DNA of 63,194 bases, filler included, from Platydemus manokwari (Eukaryota): the NCBI GenBank assembly GCA_037951405.1. It is 5 parts of 5 records of this genome, joined end to end, with 100 filler letters (N's around TTAATTAATTAA, not from the genome) between each part and the next. Parts side by side here need not be neighbours in the genome. Positions count along the whole stretch, not along the records: positions 52,025 to 63,194 come from JBBMOY010859978.1; 4 more parts are not named here. One strand, 5' to 3'. Below are positions 52,025 through 63,194 of the stretch, piece after piece. The position numbers and the translations under genes are program-made. The notes below the pieces were generated by a model. That model was not told the origin of the DNA and ran no database searches. It worked only from the letters and a program-made list of their open reading frames with translations. The stretch's first letter is position 1. Each line of letters starts with the position of its first letter.

Positions 52025-52160
52025 CAAGAAACATTAACGATGCATGGGGAGAAGGCACAGCTTCCAAACGTACCACACGTAGATGGTTTGCAAAATTTCG
52101 AGTAATAGTCTTTTAAAGTTGCTGTTAGATAACGGCCATTATTTTTGCACTAACCTAATA
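52025..52160 (+). mobile_element. Internally deleted mariner (Hsmar1/cecropia-like) with 3' TIR
   Basis: RNINDAWGEGTASKRTTRRWFAKFR (mariner HTH); TIR aacggccattatttttgcactaacctaa + TA resembles the Hsmar1 TIR. Confidence 0.85.
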
Positions 52161-52702
52161 TAAAAATCTGATTCACACATTTATCGAATTTCAATTCTTT
52201 ATAAACCTTCACATGCCCCTTTTCTTGAAAATCTTTGATTTTCTCTGAATTATTAATTATCTCTGTACCGAATTCTCTAGATATTTATCGATATAAAAAT
52301 TTCTATTTCTTATCCACTTCATATCATTTCTTTATCTTTTTATATCTTCTTTACATCTTCTTTATATCTTATCTGTATTTTCTTCTTATATAGTTTCTCC
52401 GTAGTTTCTTTATATTTTTTTTATGTCTTCTTTATATTTAAACTTTTCCTTCTCTATATTTTCTACACAACTTCTCTATATCTTCTTCACATCTTCTGTA
52501 TACTTCTCTATATCATGGACATTCTCAGAATCGAATTCAAATTTTTGATCGCCTTGGATGTCTCTACTATTTTATAAAGCACACGAACTGAAATGTCGCG
52601 ACACCAAATTATATTTTAATCACAACAATTAAAACAAATCAATATTTTAGAAAAATCCGATTCTAAACTTTTTTGAATTTCAAGTCAGTATAAATGCTCA
52701 CA
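52161..52702 (-). mobile_element. Small non-coding LTR derivative (TRIM-like) with an internal ~11-nt tandem repeat
   Basis: Two direct repeats starting tgtga on the minus strand (at 52702 and 52212); PPT aagaaaagggg immediately before the second; degenerate PBS-like aggcgatc; (tctttatatct)n internal array 52320-52515. Confidence 0.55.
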
Positions 52703-53369
52703 ATGATAACATGTTGCAGCTTCATTGTTTAAATTAATGAAATCCAGCACCTTTTCTAAGGTGTCTATTTGGACACCAATTACTTTGAACTGTAATCTCA
52801 TGCTTAAGTCAAGGGAACCTTGTTTATGGTGCCTCAAATTCATCAACAGTTCAACGTAAATGTTTCTTGAATGTGAGATTAGACAGCTATTAATATTTTA
52901 TATTAAAATCTCGAAATTACTGAAGGATTTTGAATGATCCAATCAACTGTTGGATAAAAATTAGGAAATCGTGATTTAATTAAACGTAATTCTGATCTGC
53001 AAATTTTGCATTTTCATGCGCTTCTCTGTTTATATCACACCCGTTGGTTGAGTTCAAATAAATCTCTCAAACATTATCTGTACATCACTTCCTAATTGCT
53101 TCATACTTCCAAAAGAAGGATGATTTATGAATTGCCATTATTCCTCATTTTCCTTCGCATTTCCTGACTGTCAACAATCGACATTTATTTATGGTTTATG
53201 AAAATGGTATTGCAATCAATATGAAATCGATCATTAAACTGACGATTGTAAATGAAACCGTGTTTTTGAATCATTGAGATTCGTTTTCAAATGACGATAG
53301 CACAAGGGTTCTTTGATCTGAATATTCTAATGGAGAATTGATATTTATGAAATTCATGGCTTCATTTAA

Positions 53370-53945
53370 GAAAAGGGGTCCTTTGACCTACTTTCGTAAT
53401 AATGAATTTTCGCTCGTAAAATAACTTTATAACTTAATTATCGCTATGTTTGATTTATTCATATAATTCAGTTAATATCTCATTTTTAAGATGTCTAGTA
53501 GGGACAAAACATAGTTTTAAAACCAAGTTCCCATTCTAATCACAAATCTTCTATATGGTTATTTGAGTTTTTAAATTTAAATTTATATAATTATAAATCG
53601 CGTTAATTAATTACAGATATGTTTAATAATATCATTGGTTATTTTTATCAAATAATTGTAAAAATTGAGAATATCTCTCAATTTACTTCTAATGTTAAAT
53701 AAAAGGCTTCCTCGCTAATTTTCAATAAATTGCAATTTGACCTACTTTTTTCAATTTTTCAAATCAAATAATAATCATTTTTTTGGATATTTTTAAATTG
53801 TAATGTATTTAATATTTGATTGCAATCAACTAAAACTTTTCTTAAGTACTTAGATAAAAATTCAAAATGTTTTTAAAGAATATAATTAAATAAACTATAT
53901 AGAATTTTGCAATACACATCAAATTTAAAATTTCATTTTAAGACC
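53370..53945 (+). repeat. Dispersed repeat copy (family at 49005-49865)
   Basis: Collinear similarity to 49310-49865. Confidence 0.85.
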
Positions 53946-55711
53946 CTTTATTAACTTTATCCGAAATTTATAATGGCTTTATTTAAATGAAAAAAAACAT
54001 CAAACATGATCAGCTGAAAATCACTACAATTTAATCGTTAGTACGCCACATTGCTAGTGTGCACTTTGAGTACAATCTGAAAGAATTTATCCGTAGTTCT
54101 ATAATAATATAATATAATATAATGCTTATGTAAAAGAAGACACACTTATGAATGTCTTGGTTGACGAAGATTATTCGTGTCATACAAAGCATATACTATT
54201 TTCGAAACCGAAAAATAATTTTTTTCATTTTCAATCATAAATCAATGACGAATGTGTTCGCTAATGCCTTAAACAACCGAATTTCTATGACTAATTAAAA
54301 TGGACCGTGCTCAACAGAACAAATTAATTGCAATTAAAGCCAATTCATTTACTCAGCAGAAAATCTCACAAATCAACATCTCTCACTCAGATATTAGATA
54401 TTTATCGTATATTCAATTTATCAATTTCTCGAGCATGAAAATTTACCTATCAAATTCTTGTAATAATTAATAACATTCCTTGCCAACATAATTGAAATCG
54501 TTCATCGATTAATATCAAATACTATTTTAATTTTTCCTTTCCAATAAGCTTTAGAAATAAAATAAAAATCATCTATGATTTAAAGAAAAATTCTTACCCA
54601 CAAATTTAGACTATCTGAACCGATTTGATATTATAAAATCATTCTTGGTTTTTAATTGATTTTCTGTCATTTATTTTTGCAATTTATTATTAAGTATAAT
54701 ACTAAATTGATTCCAATCATGGCAATAGTAATTATCTTAGTAGTTCAAATTGATCGAACTTAGAATCACTTACTCCAAATAGAAATATCAAATCACTAGG
54801 CTTATAATAAATAATGGTCAAAGTAAAGAAGAGGAAATGATAAATTGGATTAAAATAGTATTATATATACTAATTAGTATTAAAATTCTATTTATTTAAT
54901 CTTTAATAACTTCGATATTTTAAAAATGAGAAACAAGTCATGTTCATGATGCTCTTGAGTATGTTTTAAAGAAGGCAAAATAATCACGGAAACCATGGAA
55001 ATAACCCTCAAATGGCCGATACACACAGCCGTGCGAATCATATAAAAAGTGAATCCTTGTGACATCAAGTGTACACACGTGATAAACCCATAAAATAGGT
55101 TGGATCTCGTGTGCAACCACCAGTCTTTCTTGGTCAGTAACTGTTTGCTTTCGTGACTTTTATGTGATTTACTAGCAACTGGTTCTTATGTTTGTTATCT
55201 TTGTCTAACTTTCGTTCGCTGATCCCGCTGTTCATTGATTATTGATTTGACTGTAGGTGCTATTCTGGGTCGTCATCGTTTAGCAATTTAGTTTTCTGTA
55301 AAATATTGTGATCGCTAATTATAATTTTGATATTCAGCATTTGACATTAATAACAATGATAACTAAAGTGTTTAGAATGTTAATGACTACACATATTTAA
55401 GATTTACTGGTTCATCGGTTTCCAAATTTTATTTTTATATAAGCGTAACTGATAAAAAATAAATTTAAAATAATTTTTAAAAAATCAGAAACAACAATTA
55501 AAAATTTTTGATTCTTTAATTATCAAATTCATTTTATTAATATGCCACCAATATACATATCTGCTCGAAAAATTACACTCTAAAAAGTCTTAACAATATG
55601 AGTGCCCACTTACAGAATAATTTGGTTTTCATTTCAATGTTAATGTATTGAATTAAAAATAATCTTGATTTATTTATTTAATATCGATTTTAAATTATAA
55701 GATTTTAAACA

Positions 55712-58162
55712 ATGAACAACAGAGAAATTATTTGCATTCACATAGGCCAAGCAGGAATACAAATAGGAAATGCCGTTTGGGAATTATTTTCAATAGAACA
55801 TGAACTCGATATGAATGGGTACCAGATTTGTTACTGTCCTTGGCCACTGATAGATAATACTAGCTCTCTCTATTTTGAAATCGGTGACGGTAAATGTAAA
55901 CCTCGGTCCTTGATGATAGATTCGGAACCCTTGGTTGTTGAAGAAATCCGAACAGGATCTTGGAACAAAATGTTTGACAATAGAAGTCTAATTTGTGGTA
56001 AGGAAGATGCTTCCACAATTTTTGCAAAAGGTTACAAGTCATGCGCTAGTGATGTACTCAATGAATCCTTGACGTATTTGCGCATTTTAATAGAGGAAAC
56101 CTGTTCTTTGAATGGATTTTTGATTTTTCATTCTCTTGGAGGAGGTACTGGATCGGGATTAACTAGTAGAATAGCTGAGGTAATTCAAACTGAGACTCCC
56201 AAAAAATCAATGATACATTTAGCGATTGTTCCACCAACAAATAAATCTGGATTTATCGTTGAACCCTATAATGGAGTTCTAGCAACAGCGGCTCTGCTGG
56301 AGTCTTCAAGTCTTATGTGTATGATGGAGAATCAAGCTTTGTATGAAGCCGTCGGTCGCTTTATCGGTCAAAGTAAACTCAGCTTCATTAATATCAACAG
56401 ACACATAGCTCAAATAACGAGCTCTTTGACTACTTCATATCGGTTTTCCAATAAGTTGTCATCCGATTTCTGTGTATTCCAGACTAATTTAGTCCCTTTC
56501 CCAGAAATTCATTTTCCGATATCATCATACGCTCAATCACACGAATCCACTGACATCAATCTCATTCATATGACCAAATCATGTTTTGCTAAAGAAAACA
56601 TGGTTTTGAAATTGGAACCAGATCAAGGATGTTTTATGAGTTGTTGTCTTCTATATCGAGGAATGAATTGTGCTCCAATGGCTATCAACAATGCCATTAA
56701 AACAATCAAATCGGATCCAAATAATAAATTCGTCGACTGGTCTCCAACAAGCTTCAAAGTAGCGATCAATGTTCAGATGCCGGGATTTATTCCCTGTGCT
56801 GATATTCCAGAAACTCGACAATCTCTTTGTCTTTTATCAAACAGTACGGCAATCATTCAAGTGTGGATGAAACTCTTGGAAAATTTTCAGAACCTTTTTT
56901 CTCGGAAAGCCTTTCTCCATTGGTTTGTAGCTGAAGGTGTTGATGAATCGATTTTAAAGGAAGCTGAAAACCGCATTATCGATTTGATTTCCAAATATAA
57001 AGATTTGGAAACAAAAAAAGATCTATCGTACTTAAACAAATCAAAAGCCAGTAAAGAAGTTCCGTCATTTTTGAAGAAGATCGATACCGATTGTCCACCA
57101 ACAGATCAAAAGCGTGATAATCGAACTAATCCAATAGAAACCATTGAGTTAACAAAGAAAGGAGGAAAGAAAAATGAGAATGCCAAACCAAGAGCCAGGG
57201 GTTCCAAAGACGAATCAGTTGATGAAATTAGTGGATCTCACAATCAATATAATATATCATCTAAATACAAAGAATTGAATGGTATAATAACTCTTCCTTC
57301 TCAATCACAATTGATGACATCGCAGTCCCGAAACCCATTAGATTCCATCAGTGAATCCGATTCCCAGGTTGAATCGGTATTTCTCAAATTCAAAAACTCT
57401 CCCAATCAATCATTGGAAAGCATTGGCGTCTTACACGGTTCTAATTTATCAATTGCTTCCAAGTTCAAAGACCGAACTTTTTCTGAAATTTTACATCACA
57501 GTATTCTAGATCTTCCTCATCTGACAAATCCAAATAAATTGTTCTCATTTGACAATTCATTTATCAAAAAACATTTCCTTTCGCAATTTTGTCGTCTGAA
57601 TTCATCACTGAATGGTTCCAGATCTCAAGGGTCCATTTGTAATATCAGAACCCATTCTTGTCAACTAAATTATTCCGTGGAATATCTTAGATGTACTTCT
57701 ATCTTGTATGGTCATTTGGAAGAAATCAAACACAAAAATGAAGAGACGTCTAATGTTCCAGAAATTGAATATCAATCTGTAGATAATAATGATATTAAAA
57801 TAACAATATCGGCAGTCAACGAGCTCCGAGCTTTAATATCTCAGATCCAACCGCTTGAAGCTGTAAAGATGAATTCATCCAAAAGTCTGTTAAATCAAAG
57901 AAAGCACCGTCGAAAATCGGATATGAGGATAGAGATAGCCTGTCAAACGAGTGATCGGAAATCATTGAGTAACAGATTGACTCAGATATTCTATCGTAAA
58001 TCGACAATCACAGCTCCAAAAAAACCACCAATCATATTCCACAAACGTCATTCTTTCCAGAAAAACTTCACTCCAACAAACGTTTTCCCACACCATTCAT
58101 TGATGACTTCATCCCATATTGATTTGACGACTCTTCGTCGAATGGCTTCATTGCGTAATTAA
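55712..58162 (+). CDS. Highly divergent intronless alpha-tubulin with ~385-aa C-terminal extension (816 aa)
   Basis: REIICIHIGQAGIQIGNAVWELF..EH, GKEDA, GFLIFHSLGGGTGSG, VEPYN, FQTNLVPFPEIHFP, CCLLYRG, FVDWSPTSFKV, KAFLHWFVAEG: alpha-type motifs; core ends at ~aa 432 and the ORF stays open to 58162. Confidence 0.93.
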   Translation: MNNREIICIHIGQAGIQIGNAVWELFSIEHELDMNGYQICYCPWPLIDNTSSLYFEIGDGKCKPRSLMIDSEPLVVEEIRTGSWNKMFDNRSLICGKEDASTIFAKGYKSCASDVLNESLTYLRILIEETCSLNGFLIFHSLGGGTGSGLTSRIAEVIQTETPKKSMIHLAIVPPTNKSGFIVEPYNGVLATAALLESSSLMCMMENQALYEAVGRFIGQSKLSFININRHIAQITSSLTTSYRFSNKLSSDFCVFQTNLVPFPEIHFPISSYAQSHESTDINLIHMTKSCFAKENMVLKLEPDQGCFMSCCLLYRGMNCAPMAINNAIKTIKSDPNNKFVDWSPTSFKVAINVQMPGFIPCADIPETRQSLCLLSNSTAIIQVWMKLLENFQNLFSRKAFLHWFVAEGVDESILKEAENRIIDLISKYKDLETKKDLSYLNKSKASKEVPSFLKKIDTDCPPTDQKRDNRTNPIETIELTKKGGKKNENAKPRARGSKDESVDEISGSHNQYNISSKYKELNGIITLPSQSQLMTSQSRNPLDSISESDSQVESVFLKFKNSPNQSLESIGVLHGSNLSIASKFKDRTFSEILHHSILDLPHLTNPNKLFSFDNSFIKKHFLSQFCRLNSSLNGSRSQGSICNIRTHSCQLNYSVEYLRCTSILYGHLEEIKHKNEETSNVPEIEYQSVDNNDIKITISAVNELRALISQIQPLEAVKMNSSKSLLNQRKHRRKSDMRIEIACQTSDRKSLSNRLTQIFYRKSTITAPKKPPIIFHKRHSFQKNFTPTNVFPHHSLMTSSHIDLTTLRRMASLRN

Positions 58163-58302
58163 TATTTTATTTTCATCCTTAATGTTCGATTAAGCATTAC
58201 CATTCGACCATATTTATTCGATCTTGTTATGACATGAAAATCGAAAGGTCAGAAGTATTCAAACAATTTATTATAAAAAATCCTTTCACAAAGCTAATAG
58301 CA

Positions 58303-58333
<31 letters not shown>

Positions 58334-58464
58334 CTAATAATAAAAATAAAAATAACATATTCTGAATATGAAAAGAAAATATTTAAAGTAAACTAACAAA
58401 TTTAAAGACGATTATTAAAATTAATTGTTCTGCTACAGTCAAATTCAAAGCAACAATTCTCTCA

Positions 58465-61400
58465 TTATAAGTAAAGAACGCACTGCATAAACTGAAATAG
58501 AGATAATAATAGAAAAACAATTAAATACATAATTGGAACAAAAGTTCAAACCTCATCTTGCGGAAAGATGGCTTCTCCTTTGCTGGTCTTGGTTTGAACT
58601 TTATAAGTGAGAAAGACTGTTCGTAATCGAATTAAAAGCAAAATATAATCATCGAAAGTAATTATTCCCGCTTTACTGGCATATCTGGTTATAATAGCAC
58701 TAAACACTCGATTGCTCACTTTGAATCCTGAAATGAAATAATAAATAATTATAAATTACTTTGTTTTAATTGGTCATTTTTAATTAAATTTTGTTTAAAA
58801 ACTAGGTTCGACCAAGCTTGACCAAAGCATAAATAGCTTGTTAATACTATGGCTATGATTTCTGCAATTTTTTTTCGTTTGATTCGACACGAAAAATTCT
58901 CTATCAAAATGTGTTGAATGAAATGAGTTTGATCATTAAATCACGAAAACAAAATCAACATTTATTGAGTTCACATACCTTTGGTAGGCCATTACTTGAT
59001 AATTAAAATCCTTTCAAATCTACAGTTAATATAAATCATCTCTAGACCATAAAAACTTTAATATAGTTTTTATCTAAAAAATTGTTTCATAAATGTAATT
59101 TCATTCCTGCCTAACCCAGATTATTAATGGAATCGTTAGCATCCATTTGAGGAAAATATAAAGAAACTACTAATAATTTAATATAATAATTTTAATAAGA
59201 AAATGTTAATTACAATTTTGATTTAATAAGTTTCAAAATAAAAAATAATATTTTGAAATTTTGTTAATATGAAGTAATTATTAAGTAATTTAAATATTTT
59301 TATCTATACCTGATTAAGTTTGATAGCTAAAGCTCTCTAAAAAAAGATTTTTAAGAAAAAAGATTTAAATTTGTTTAAAAAATTGTTTGATTTGTTGGTA
59401 TTAAATAAAAATTAAAAAATAGTAATAATGACTTCTATCTTTGAACCGTCAATTTCAAGCGAAGTAGCTGCTACTAACAATCCACAACACGTAATCCATT
59501 GATATTTTCTTTTAATTCATTACTTGTATCCATAGTTATTTGACCGATCATCACATCATTCTAGATTCGTGAATCATGATTGGTTCGTGTTGCAAATCAA
59601 TAAATCCCTTATAATTGTAATAATATTAAATTTCCTTTGAAATCACCGTTTGAGTTTAACAGAGATATGTCAATCATTAGAGCAAATTATCATCATGTAT
59701 AGTCGATTATTTTTTACCAGATATATTCCGAAATACTTTTACATAAAAGTTACAATTTTAATGGTAAATTGTTAGAATAATGGCATCAAAAGATATTTGA
59801 TCCATACTTTAAAGGATTTTAATGTCAATCTCAATAAAAAGATATATTCATCCCTTCAAATCAATGTTTGTGTCGATCATCAGCAGAAATTAATGAAATA
59901 TCATCGTGTTTTCAACATGCTACCAAGAATTTAGAAGTATTTAAATAACATCTTCAAAAAATCTTTGAAAATACTAACCACTAACAATACAATATTCTAA
60001 TCCAATTTTATCAAAGAAATACTTAAAATCTACTTCAGAATGAAAATGTCAAACAATTTCGAAAATTTAAACCATATCTCGTTTTAAACAAATTAATAAA
60101 ACACAAATCTTATTGTTCACCTATATAGTCGAGCGCTCTTCGAATTTCATAACTGTTAAAATTACCACTGTGATCTTCATCAAACTTTTTAAAGACAGTC
60201 TAAATGAGAATAATATATTGGTAAACTTTGTCACAAATGGTCATTTATTACCTTCCAAAGTCGCAAATCATCCCACAAGGTTTTGAATTCACTGAATCCC
60301 AATCTACCAGATAAATCGGCCTAAATTATTAACACTGCTACATTAGATAAGGCAGAATATTGATAATGGAAAGAAATTTAATAAAATAGGTTAGAGAAAT
60401 ATGAGAATAATTATTTCAGATAGGCCTTTTCTTTTAATTTAATTATGAGCATCAGCAGTGACAGATAAAAATTCTCCCTTCTGTCAAGTTACGAAAAAAT
60501 TAAGTACAATCACGTCGTGGTTATATTTAATTTTTTATATTTTTATTTTCTTATATTAATGAATTGTGTTTGTTGAGCTGAGTTTTGAGGGCTTATTGAT
60601 TTTATTTTTGCCCATTTCATAAGCCACTCCATTAATAAACAGATTTCGTACTCATTCCTATTCATCAGTACTGAATATCATCTCGAATAAATCGTTTAAT
60701 AATTCCTTCATTGGTGGATTCGAACTCTTAATTTCACTCAAATTCACTATCACTCACCAACTGGTTACCGACACTTGTTGTAATTTGGTTTTGTTTACAT
60801 AAGGTGATGTCACTGTAGAATATATAAAATTAATAATGTACAAAAATAAGAAAAGCATAAAAGTTAACAATGAAAGCACTAACATCAATCATAGCTACCA
60901 TACTGCGACACGTTTCCATTGAGAAACCATCGAATTTGAAATCTAAATCATTCCATCATCGTTTTTCTCATTGACTTGATATGAAAAGTCGACTTACTTT
61001 CTGTAATAAAGTAGTCATTAGAAATCGTTAAGTGACTCTATTACTTCACTAACCTCGTCTAAAAGATGCATTAAGAATTTGTTGTAGCTCACCAGCATCA
61101 ATTTCACCATCATCTCCAGCTATTGTTTTAAAAGCCGCTTGCAAACGTTCGGTATTCCGGTCTTCTTCATTCTTTACTTCTGGAGGAAGTTCCTTATTCC
61201 ACTTAATATCATAAACAAGAATAAAATGAGTGTGGTTATCTTTAAATAAATAAGAATTATAGTTTCAGTTATTAGAAACCTTATTTTATAAAAAAAAACC
61301 GTAAGTGGTCATATTTCATGTAGATGATGAGATACTCTCACCTGAAAACTAAAGAAATACCCAAAAATTCACATCTAGCTCAATGTGAATAACTTTAATA

Positions 61401-62601
61401 TATTATTGAAGAGAAATATTGAATGGCTCTTGGCTCTAAACTCAATACTCTCAATTGAAGCTTATGAGTTTAGTACTCTATATAGAACCGTTCGGCTACA
61501 ATGCACTTCTATCGGCAAAAATTCGAAATCGATAAATAAGAGTTAAGGGTTATCAATTTTACACGACTGTTTTATGGAAAAAAATATTGAAAAGATATTT
61601 TTAATTCCCTTAATTCTCTCTAATAATAGATAAAATTATTAGATTCCTTTATCCTGTACTCAATACCCGATCTGTCTCTATACGACAAAAACTAATCAGA
61701 TCGGCTAGATAGAAACATTTTCGGTACTGATATCATTATTATCATTCGATAAACCAGAAGGAAAATTCCAACATTTTCATGCCAGAAAATTGAATTGCTT
61801 TTCTGCCTTTCACAATATGATTGACGTTTCCTTTGAGCTCCATTAAAATCGAATCTGATTATTAGAGAATGATTTTTGCTTCATTCCTTCAATTTTTAAA
61901 ATTAATCTACTGATATTTTCTTTGTTCAATAAAAGATTTTTATCTCATTTTGACATGAAATATGTTGGTGGATTGTTTTTTTTTTAATTTTTTTTGTTTT
62001 TTAAGATTTAAGTCTTTTTTAAATAATGGAAAATTGTGAAATTATTTTAAACAGACTTTTGAACAGATAATAAACCCATCTGACTACTCTATTAAATAAT
62101 CAAGTTATCATCAACAAATAATTATAATTATAATATTATTATTATGACAATCATTCTTTTTCTTATACTGGTATTACATAATAGGTGATTTTGGTTTATT
62201 CTTTTATAAAAGAACTAATTCAAATTTATTAGAGAAATAACATATTATCATAAAAAGTTATATTTTATACAAAAATATTATAATGGAGATGTAATTACCT
62301 TTGGAATTGTTATTTCAGTTTTCTGGTCTAATTGGCTGTTACAAAAATTACTTCATCAAAATAATAACAATATAAATCAAAACTTCGAGCTATATTCTTT
62401 CTCTGAAAAGATCCGTAATAAAAATTTTGCTTCTTCCCCAGGATTGAAAGTCGATGGAACAATGGCATAATCTCCAACAGGTAATTTATGTCGACCGCAA
62501 ATTTCTCGAAGATTAATAAATGCTGGCGATTTTGTATAGGAAGAATTGGTCCGAAAGTAACGGGTGTCAAGAAGAGTGGTATTATAAACGCCACCTTTCA
62601 A
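58465..62601 (-). CDS. Classical calpain, 3' part (domain III end + penta-EF-hand); exons 62384-62601, 62299-62335, 61054-61201, 60884-60942, 60252-60320, 60121-60199, 58552-58727, 58465-58491; 5' exons outside the window
   Basis: [117 protein letters not shown]; all phases consistent. Confidence 0.95.
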
Positions 62602-63109
62602 CTGAAAAACCAAAAAGCCTTTATGATTTTCATGTTCTTAACAACATTATATTCTAGTAGTCTTTTATTTTCAAATCACACTTATATTTTAAAGATTTTG
62701 ATGTATTAAATATATAATTAGGAAATTTAATAATAGATTAAATAATAATAATAATAATTATTATTATAGATTTTGATTTCCTAAGTTTTTGTCCTGTCGA
62801 AAAAGAATACCGTATCATTTACGTTGTCATGGTTGAATGAAAATGAACTTAATTATTTAACTATTTTAACTATTCTCACAAAAAATTATCATAGATCTTC
62901 TTCAAAAGTTCAAAATTGAAAATAGACATTTCTTTTCAAAATATCCTCAACACGTATTTTCAATTTATTCTCCCTGTTTAAAAAAGTTTGAAGATGTAGA
63001 TTTATTTTTGAAATAATATGATTTTCATATCAGATTCTAGATTACTGAAAAATACTTTTGGGTTTTGTGCAGCTAAATCAGCAACTATTTATTAAAACAA
63101 CCCTTTACA

Positions 63110-63194
63110 ATATTAGGTACCACGTTGAGTCAAAAGTTATTCATGTTTTTATGCAGGTATTTTATTAACACAAATTGTTATAACGCTGAACATA
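63110..63194. repeat. Inverted copy of the repeat at 32927-33005
   Basis: Exact reverse-complement match over ~65 nt. Confidence 0.9.

Follow-up and report, generated by a model that had tools for sequence, protein, structure and literature searches.

A divergent, long-tailed alpha-tubulin-like gene with valine at the catalytic E254 position in the flatworm Platydemus manokwari

We analyzed a stretch of 63,194 nucleotides from Platydemus manokwari (GenBank assembly GCA_037951405.1), here called the window, which joins five parts of five records with filler between them. Its last piece, positions 52,025 to 63,194, comes from record JBBMOY010859978.1 and carries an open reading frame (ORF) for a very divergent alpha-tubulin-like protein, in which valine occupies the position of E254, the GTPase-activating (GAP) glutamate of alpha-tubulin. 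That the ORF is genuine, under selection and codes for an alpha paralogue devoid of the GAP glutamate is, in our view, highly probable. The fuller explanation, a functional and selectively maintained paralogue that acts as a hydrolysis-incompetent subunit, stands in our judgement at about even chances. Microtubule dynamic instability depends on alpha-E254, and work on hydrolysis-dead tubulin has so far mainly used engineered mutants that stand in for the GTP cap.

The features of the gene are listed below. P0018 (UniParc UPI0006084C13) is its orthologue in another species, and P0128 (UPI0006086A69) is probably a paralogue in the proteome of P0018; pLDDT is the predicted local distance difference test score of AlphaFold2.

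55712..58162, + strand: whole ORF, divergent alpha-tubulin-like protein with a long tail; single exon, 816 codons and a stop codon
55724..56353, + strand: Tubulin/FtsZ GTPase domain, residues 5-214 (Pfam PF00091, E 6.8e-46; AlphaFold2 pLDDT 83-95)
56006..56032, + strand: T3 loop, DASTIFAKG against DAANNYARG in alpha (N101 to Thr, N102 to Ile)
56138..56158, + strand: T4 signature GGGTGSG, intact in the alignment
56420..56521, + strand: residues 237-270, the longest run identical in the orthologue (34 residues; permutation test), covering the end of H7, the T7 loop and H8
56441..56490, + strand: T7 loop RFSNKLSSDFCVFQTNL, residues 244-260, with the D251 equivalent present, G246 changed to Asn and N249 to Ser
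56474..56476, + strand: GTA codon, Val255 at the catalytic alpha-E254 position in the alignment; Val in P0018, Leu in P0128
56501..56878, + strand: Tubulin C-terminal domain, residues 264-389, including the alpha-type S9-S10 segment (Pfam PF03953, E 6.2e-25)
56528..56563, + strand: M-loop region, residues 273-284, aligned as five residues shorter (alpha 274-278) and poorly conserved between orthologues
57032..58159, + strand: C-terminal extension, residues 441-816, replacing the acidic alpha tail and predicted to be disordered
57479..57514, + strand: conserved tail island FSEILHHSILDL, residues 590-601, a predicted short helix (P0018 comparison, AlphaFold2)

An alpha-type tubulin lacking the catalytic glutamate

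Translation of the window DNA required no intron across 55712-58162, and at the 29% G+C of the piece the chance of 816 codons without a stop is ~2e-29. Both Pfam domains scored far over their gathering thresholds. When the protein was compared with solved structures by phmmer, all 60 matches listed were alpha-tubulins (best E 1.6e-111, ~40% identity), which bears out the alpha-tubulin identity proposed in an earlier, sequence-only reading of this DNA. An AlphaFold2 model built with a 28-row alignment had pLDDT values of 83-95 over residues 1-437, and Foldseek overlaid these residues on alpha-tubulin chains with template modelling (TM) scores of 0.93-0.95 and root-mean-square deviations of 1.5-2.6 Å.

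Several features separate the protein from beta-tubulin. In the phylogenetic tree it was nested inside the alpha-like group, with support of 100/100 for the beta outgroup. Its T1 loop has GQAG as in alpha, while the canonical beta rows of our data set have GQCG. The S9-S10 loop is of alpha length, aligning without gaps to alpha 356-375; beta-tubulin is shorter in this loop. A beta- or gamma-type identity was rejected on the solved matches listed, all of them alpha, and on the placement inside the alpha-like group. By predicted fold and alignment, the protein is an alpha-type tubulin. Prediction of a complex between the tubulin domain, GTP and an animal beta-tubulin (P0209:1-431), run without controls, gave scores of 0.01 and 0.00, which speak neither for nor against binding.

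Relative to canonical alpha-tubulin, the alignment showed that T1 (GQAGIQ), D69/E71, T4 (GGGTGSG), E183, N206 and N228 were retained, as were H8 (FQTNLVP), the FVDW.PT.FK motif and H11 (KAFLHW); the presence of GGGTGSG and of the N206 and N228 equivalents had been noted from the sequence beforehand. Changes common to P0018 were found elsewhere. The N terminus departs from the MREC/MREI autoregulation motif, which normally comes straight after Met, and reads MNNREI in place of MREC (MSNREI in P0018). The H1-S2 loop contains a conserved CYCPWPL motif with Cys at the K40 position, and Y224 and R264 are replaced by Phe and Glu, respectively. The T3 loop of P0018 reads DAASIFAKG, and thus N101 and N102 are lost in both proteins. 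The five-residue M-loop deletion lies at the start of the loop and is also common to both, while the remaining loop differs between them.

The T7 loop contains the change of greatest interest. phmmer aligned 'rfsnklssdfcvfqtnlvp' without gaps to alpha RFDGALNVDLTEFQTNLVP, and MAFFT gave the same register, confirming the earlier placement of Val255 (GTA, 56474-56476) at E254; the GTA codon is read from the assembly and backed by the orthologue. The catalytic pair of T7 is thereby reduced to D251. The GxxNxD pattern has become NxxSxD, as had also been seen, with G246 and N249 replaced and D251 retained. The neighbors L252 and T253 are changed to Phe and Cys, and apart from D251 no acidic residue lies near position 254, which is surrounded by Phe, Cys, Val and Phe.

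Selection on the tubulin domain and the T7 loop

Relatives were sought in ~5.8 billion clustered proteins and, exhaustively with HMMER, among 1.84 billion representatives. The sole close relative was P0018, a UniParc-only entry of 850 amino acids with an open frame; searches with the whole protein, with the T7 region in two length ranges and with HMMER returned no orthologue besides it. The two proteins were 71% identical over residues 1-440, and the T7 loop of P0018 was identical, including Val at 254. The earlier reading had asked for position 254 in flatworm orthologues; P0018 does not have Glu there.

The identity between the two proteins is unevenly distributed. When the identity pattern was permuted, 61 of 100,000 trials gave a run as long as the 34 residues that contain the T7 loop. 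The next-longest runs covered T1 (residues 3-19), T5 (178-190), T4 (139-151) and residues 192-203. With T1, T4, T5 and T7 among the five longest runs, the nucleotide loops are among the most constrained parts of the protein. Columns with conservation of 90% or more in 182 other tubulins were 96% identical between the orthologues, compared with 41-67% for variable columns (p = 0.0016, Fisher test; p = 3e-6, Spearman correlation). The frame is open in both species despite identities of 71% in the domain and 25% in the tail. Read from the two sequences, this pattern of substitution is the one left by purifying selection when a tubulin fold is still at work.

Since fold-critical columns are spared and the loop is shared with P0018, the T7 change can have come neither from a read error nor from neutral erosion of the loop. 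The change had been described beforehand as erosion of the whole loop, a description that does not fit a loop within the stretch where the protein is most strongly conserved. As judged from these comparisons, the loss of E254 is a selected state, common to the orthologue (Val) and the paralogue (Leu).

A flatworm clade with variable position 254

To place the gene among tubulins, a maximum-likelihood tree was constructed from 44 rows under LG+C20 with posterior mean site frequencies (PMSF) and beta-tubulins as the outgroup. The Platydemus protein grouped with P0018 with support of 100/100, with P0128 added at 99/98, and within a 16-row clade at 99/98. The stem branch was long, at 0.96 changes per site. 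The bootstrap of this tree was not fully settled and its branches are all long, so that long-branch attraction is possible; a quick tree of 75 rows agreed with it. All clade members bearing names are flatworms, namely Paragonimus westermani (two sequences), Calicophoron daubneyi and Mesocestoides corti, and the other members have UniParc ids within the batch range of the Mesocestoides entry.

E254 was absent in 11 of the 16 clade members, with T1, T4, E/D183, N206 and N228 retained in these 11. The residue at this position was Glu in five members, Val in three, Ala, Gln and Asp in two each, and Leu and His in one each. Within the clade, the loops that bind a subunit's own nucleotide were nearly invariant and T7 was variable. 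Most members have long extensions, mostly C-terminal, which are mutually non-homologous.

P0128, of 441 amino acids, has Leu at 254; its M-loop is of full length, and it lacks a long tail. Its T7 pattern, DF..FQTNL, is like that of P0018, and the UniParc numbers of the two entries are adjacent, consistent with P0128 probably being a paralogue from the same proteome. Because P0128 also lacks Glu, the loss of E254 seems to predate the duplication. A second gene of this kind may exist elsewhere in the Platydemus genome.

The clade genes of Paragonimus and Mesocestoides contain introns and the Platydemus ORF has none; the intronless state is therefore not a character of the clade. P0174 and P0161 lie on contigs L001 (Logan SRR33152634, 3720 nt) and L002 (ENA ERZ3792534, 1708 nt), with flanks of ~100-450 nt. 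The transcript-like shape of these contigs hints that clade members are expressed.

In an alignment of 184 representatives, ~30 non-beta rows from many lineages lacked Glu at 254, including P0137 from Penaeus (shrimp) and P0143 from Glandiceps (acorn worm), both with Asp, so that the Platydemus gene is not alone in having naturally lost it. As judged from this alignment, divergent alpha paralogues seem widely to have lost or weakened the GAP residue, a matter that has apparently received little study. Full-text literature searches on divergent alpha-tubulins of flatworms found no account of the present clade. The five alpha isotypes described from Fasciola are 72-95% identical to each other (PMC3820024), and the clade members, at most ~40% identical to canonical alpha, are far more divergent than these.

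The C-terminal tail

The tail of 376 residues is rich in Ser, Leu, Lys, Asn and Ile and has a net charge of +19, and no acidic, Glu-rich tail ending in Tyr was found after H12. AlphaFold2 gave no confident fold for the tail: save for a few weak helices, pLDDT stayed under 50. A Pfam search with the tail found no significant family (best E 0.1, below the cut-off), an Atlas search found no neighbor, and a comparison with the extensions of other clade members found no similarity. At 25% identity to the tail of P0018, it contains short conserved islands. In addition to the island at residues 590-601, a second one, KSLS..L.Q.F near residue 750, is common to P0018.

Comparison with known tubulins

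Canonical alpha-tubulin (TUBA1B; PDB 5kmg and 3j8x, chains A) has the same two Pfam domains and is matched at the TM scores and ~40% identity given above, with T1, T4, T5, N206, N228, D251, H8 FQTNLVP, the S9-S10 segment and H11 KAFxHW in common. The Platydemus protein differs from it in Val for E254, the replaced G246 and N249, Thr and Ile for N101 and N102, the MNNREI terminus, Cys for K40, the shorter M-loop and a basic tail of ~380 residues.

In canonical tubulin, alpha-E254 activates GTP hydrolysis on the beta subunit beneath it (PMC7018511). Human tubulin with E254A lacks GTPase activity, is a strong nucleator and forms stable GTP microtubules, and E254D tubulin hydrolyzes GTP slowly and hardly ever undergoes catastrophes (PMC7018511). 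The biochemical premise on which the gene was first singled out, that substitution of E254 locks the lattice in its GTP state, thus stands. Further engineered E254 tubulins have been described (PMC8764682, PMC11893814). Together, the human E254A, E254D and E254N mutants hydrolyze GTP slowly or not at all, nucleate strongly and form stable GTP lattices (PMC7018511, PMC8764682, PMC11893814), and they lack the same catalytic side chain as the Platydemus protein. However, they are single substitutions in canonical alpha, whereas ~60% of the domain differs here, and the engineered phenotype is therefore not simply transferable.

The nearest analogue in the literature is a natural alpha isotype of coccidians without the canonical GAP glutamate, alpha3 of Toxoplasma gondii (TGME49_231400) and its homologues, for which slowed or absent GAP activity and stabilized polymers were proposed (PMC10056924). 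Like the Platydemus protein, alpha3 has lost the GAP glutamate, carries an extra residue within the N-terminal MRE motif and ends in an unusually long tail (PMC10056924). It differs in also lacking D251 (Thr), in having His or Gln at 254 with a shifted Glu at 253, and in a tail of 48 residues (PMC10056924), compared with a retained D251, a hydrophobic residue at 254 and ~380 tail residues in the Platydemus protein. We compared alpha3 by its description only; because the Platydemus gene sits in a flatworm clade, the two are probably of independent origin.

The clade relatives (P0128, P0141, P0146, P0164 from Paragonimus, P0169 from Mesocestoides, and P0152 and P0157 from trematodes) share with the Platydemus protein the kept nucleotide-binding loops and the variable T7. 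The M-loop deletion and the CYCPW motif of the H1-S2 loop, in contrast, are confined to the Platydemus gene and P0018, and the extensions of the relatives are non-homologous to the Platydemus tail.

Possible mechanism and alternative explanations

A mechanism in which the protein stabilizes microtubules by co-polymerization, which we rate at somewhat less than even odds, can be outlined from the retained and altered residues. The protein would bind its own structural GTP through the retained T1, T4, T5, N206 and N228 and would pair with beta-tubulin as the alpha subunit. Its T7/H8 face would dock against the following beta subunit at the exchangeable site, where, with Val at 254, the hydrolytic water could not be activated; the longitudinal interface would therefore remain GTP-bound, like the intradimer interface. 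Incorporation might then stabilize, cap or nucleate non-dynamic microtubule structures in some specialized cell type, and the basic tail might serve as a built-in anchor, similar to a microtubule-associated protein, on acidic tubulin surfaces or other partners.

A broader version of the co-polymer mechanism is rather doubtful. It would make the clade a flatworm-specific alpha family that has retained GTP binding and lost E254, often repeatedly, and whose members, each with a long tail of its own, would be natural GTP-locked subunits building the hyperstable, non-dynamic microtubule structures of the phylum. The frozen hydrophobic T7 of the present gene would then form a permanent, intradimer-like GTP interface with beta-tubulin. 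As such structures we have in mind, by assumption, sperm cortical microtubule arrays, the atypical 9+'1' central core of sperm, and tegumental or protonephridial arrays.

Several observations weigh against a hydrolysis-incompetent lattice subunit. The M-loop, which makes the main lateral contact, is shortened and unlike between the orthologues, and N101 and N102 of T3 are changed. Conservation within the domain is lowest in the H10/S9 block (residues 321-360), at 55%. A tail of ~380 residues on each subunit could sterically hinder a closed lattice. The one sequencing run found to hold the ORF stretch is not on record as RNA.

Some of these observations would suit a non-polymerizing pseudo-tubulin, the main alternative, which we find unlikely, if still a serious contender. 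Such a protein would retain the fold and the nucleotide without entering the lattice, and would act as a scaffold, as a beta-sequestering or end-capping factor, or as a partner of non-tubulin proteins through its tail. The shortened and unconserved M-loop, the loss of K40, of the acidic tail and of the MREC motif, the stem of 0.96 changes per site and the bulk of the tail are all in its favor, as is the low conservation of block 321-360, which is part of the minus-end face. The large, basic and disordered tail with its short conserved islands also suggests partners that bind linear motifs. However, T7/H8 makes sense only when facing the nucleotide pocket of another tubulin, and it is the most conserved stretch of the protein, and the H8, FVDW.PT.FK and H11 motifs and the alpha-type S9-S10 segment are still present.

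An ordinary dynamic alpha isotype, in which catalysis has passed to D251, to some other residue or to a bound partner, would agree with the presence of D251 and with the otherwise canonical H8, but we regard it as improbable. Besides D251 the surroundings of position 254 offer no acidic residue, and in human tubulin E254A alone abolishes GTPase activity despite D251 (PMC7018511).

A decaying retrocopy, its single exon derived from retroposition and its T7 change from neutral erosion, would account for the absence of introns and for the many canonical alpha features that are lost. This is very improbable with 816 codons open at 29% G+C, an 850-residue open frame in the orthologue, differences between orthologues that avoid the fold-critical columns, and frozen nucleotide loops. 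A neutral or processed pseudogene was rejected on the frames intact in both orthologues and the substitutions that avoid conserved columns.

The chance that GAA was misread as GTA at a single codon, which had been doubted from the start, is negligible: the orthologue of another species has Val inside 34 identical residues, P0128 has Leu, and the adjoining loop positions also differ from alpha, and on these grounds a sequencing or assembly error was rejected.

If the protein is indeed a hydrolysis-incompetent subunit, a naturally selected alpha without E254 that is kept across species, in a flatworm clade where this loss is frequent, would show that evolution employs such subunits, and it would be a natural reagent for studying how they tune lattice stability, nucleation and recognition by end-binding (EB) proteins. 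The claim is weaker than at first appearance, given that E254 loss also occurs in Toxoplasma alpha3 and in ~30 other representatives. Many clade members belong to parasites, flukes and tapeworms, in which tubulin is a drug target, and parasitology may therefore also take an interest in a tubulin class that is restricted to one lineage and has a remodelled interdimer face.

Surroundings of the gene

The same piece carries a calpain-like gene on the - strand (58546-62613), which runs off the end of the piece and is convergent with the tubulin-like ORF, the 3' ends of the two being ~380 nt apart. Its introns are short and AT-rich. The other features of the piece are as follows.

62377-62613, - strand: Calpain_III exon (Pfam, E 2.9e-16)
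61049-61144, - strand: EF-hand exon of the calpain-like gene (Pfam, E 0.0027)
58549-58719, - strand: weak calpain-13-like C-terminal EF-hand (E 0.099)
58300-58335: (AAT)n microsatellite, ~140 bases downstream of the stop codon of the tubulin-like ORF
52333-52514: degenerate tandem array with an 11-base unit TATCTTCTTTA, ~16 copies, 65% matches
52027-52104, + strand: mariner/Mos1 transposase HTH_48 fragment of 26 residues (Pfam, E 1.8e-7)

The HTH_48 fragment is truncated at the edge of the piece, and stop codons follow it, which indicates a transposon remnant.

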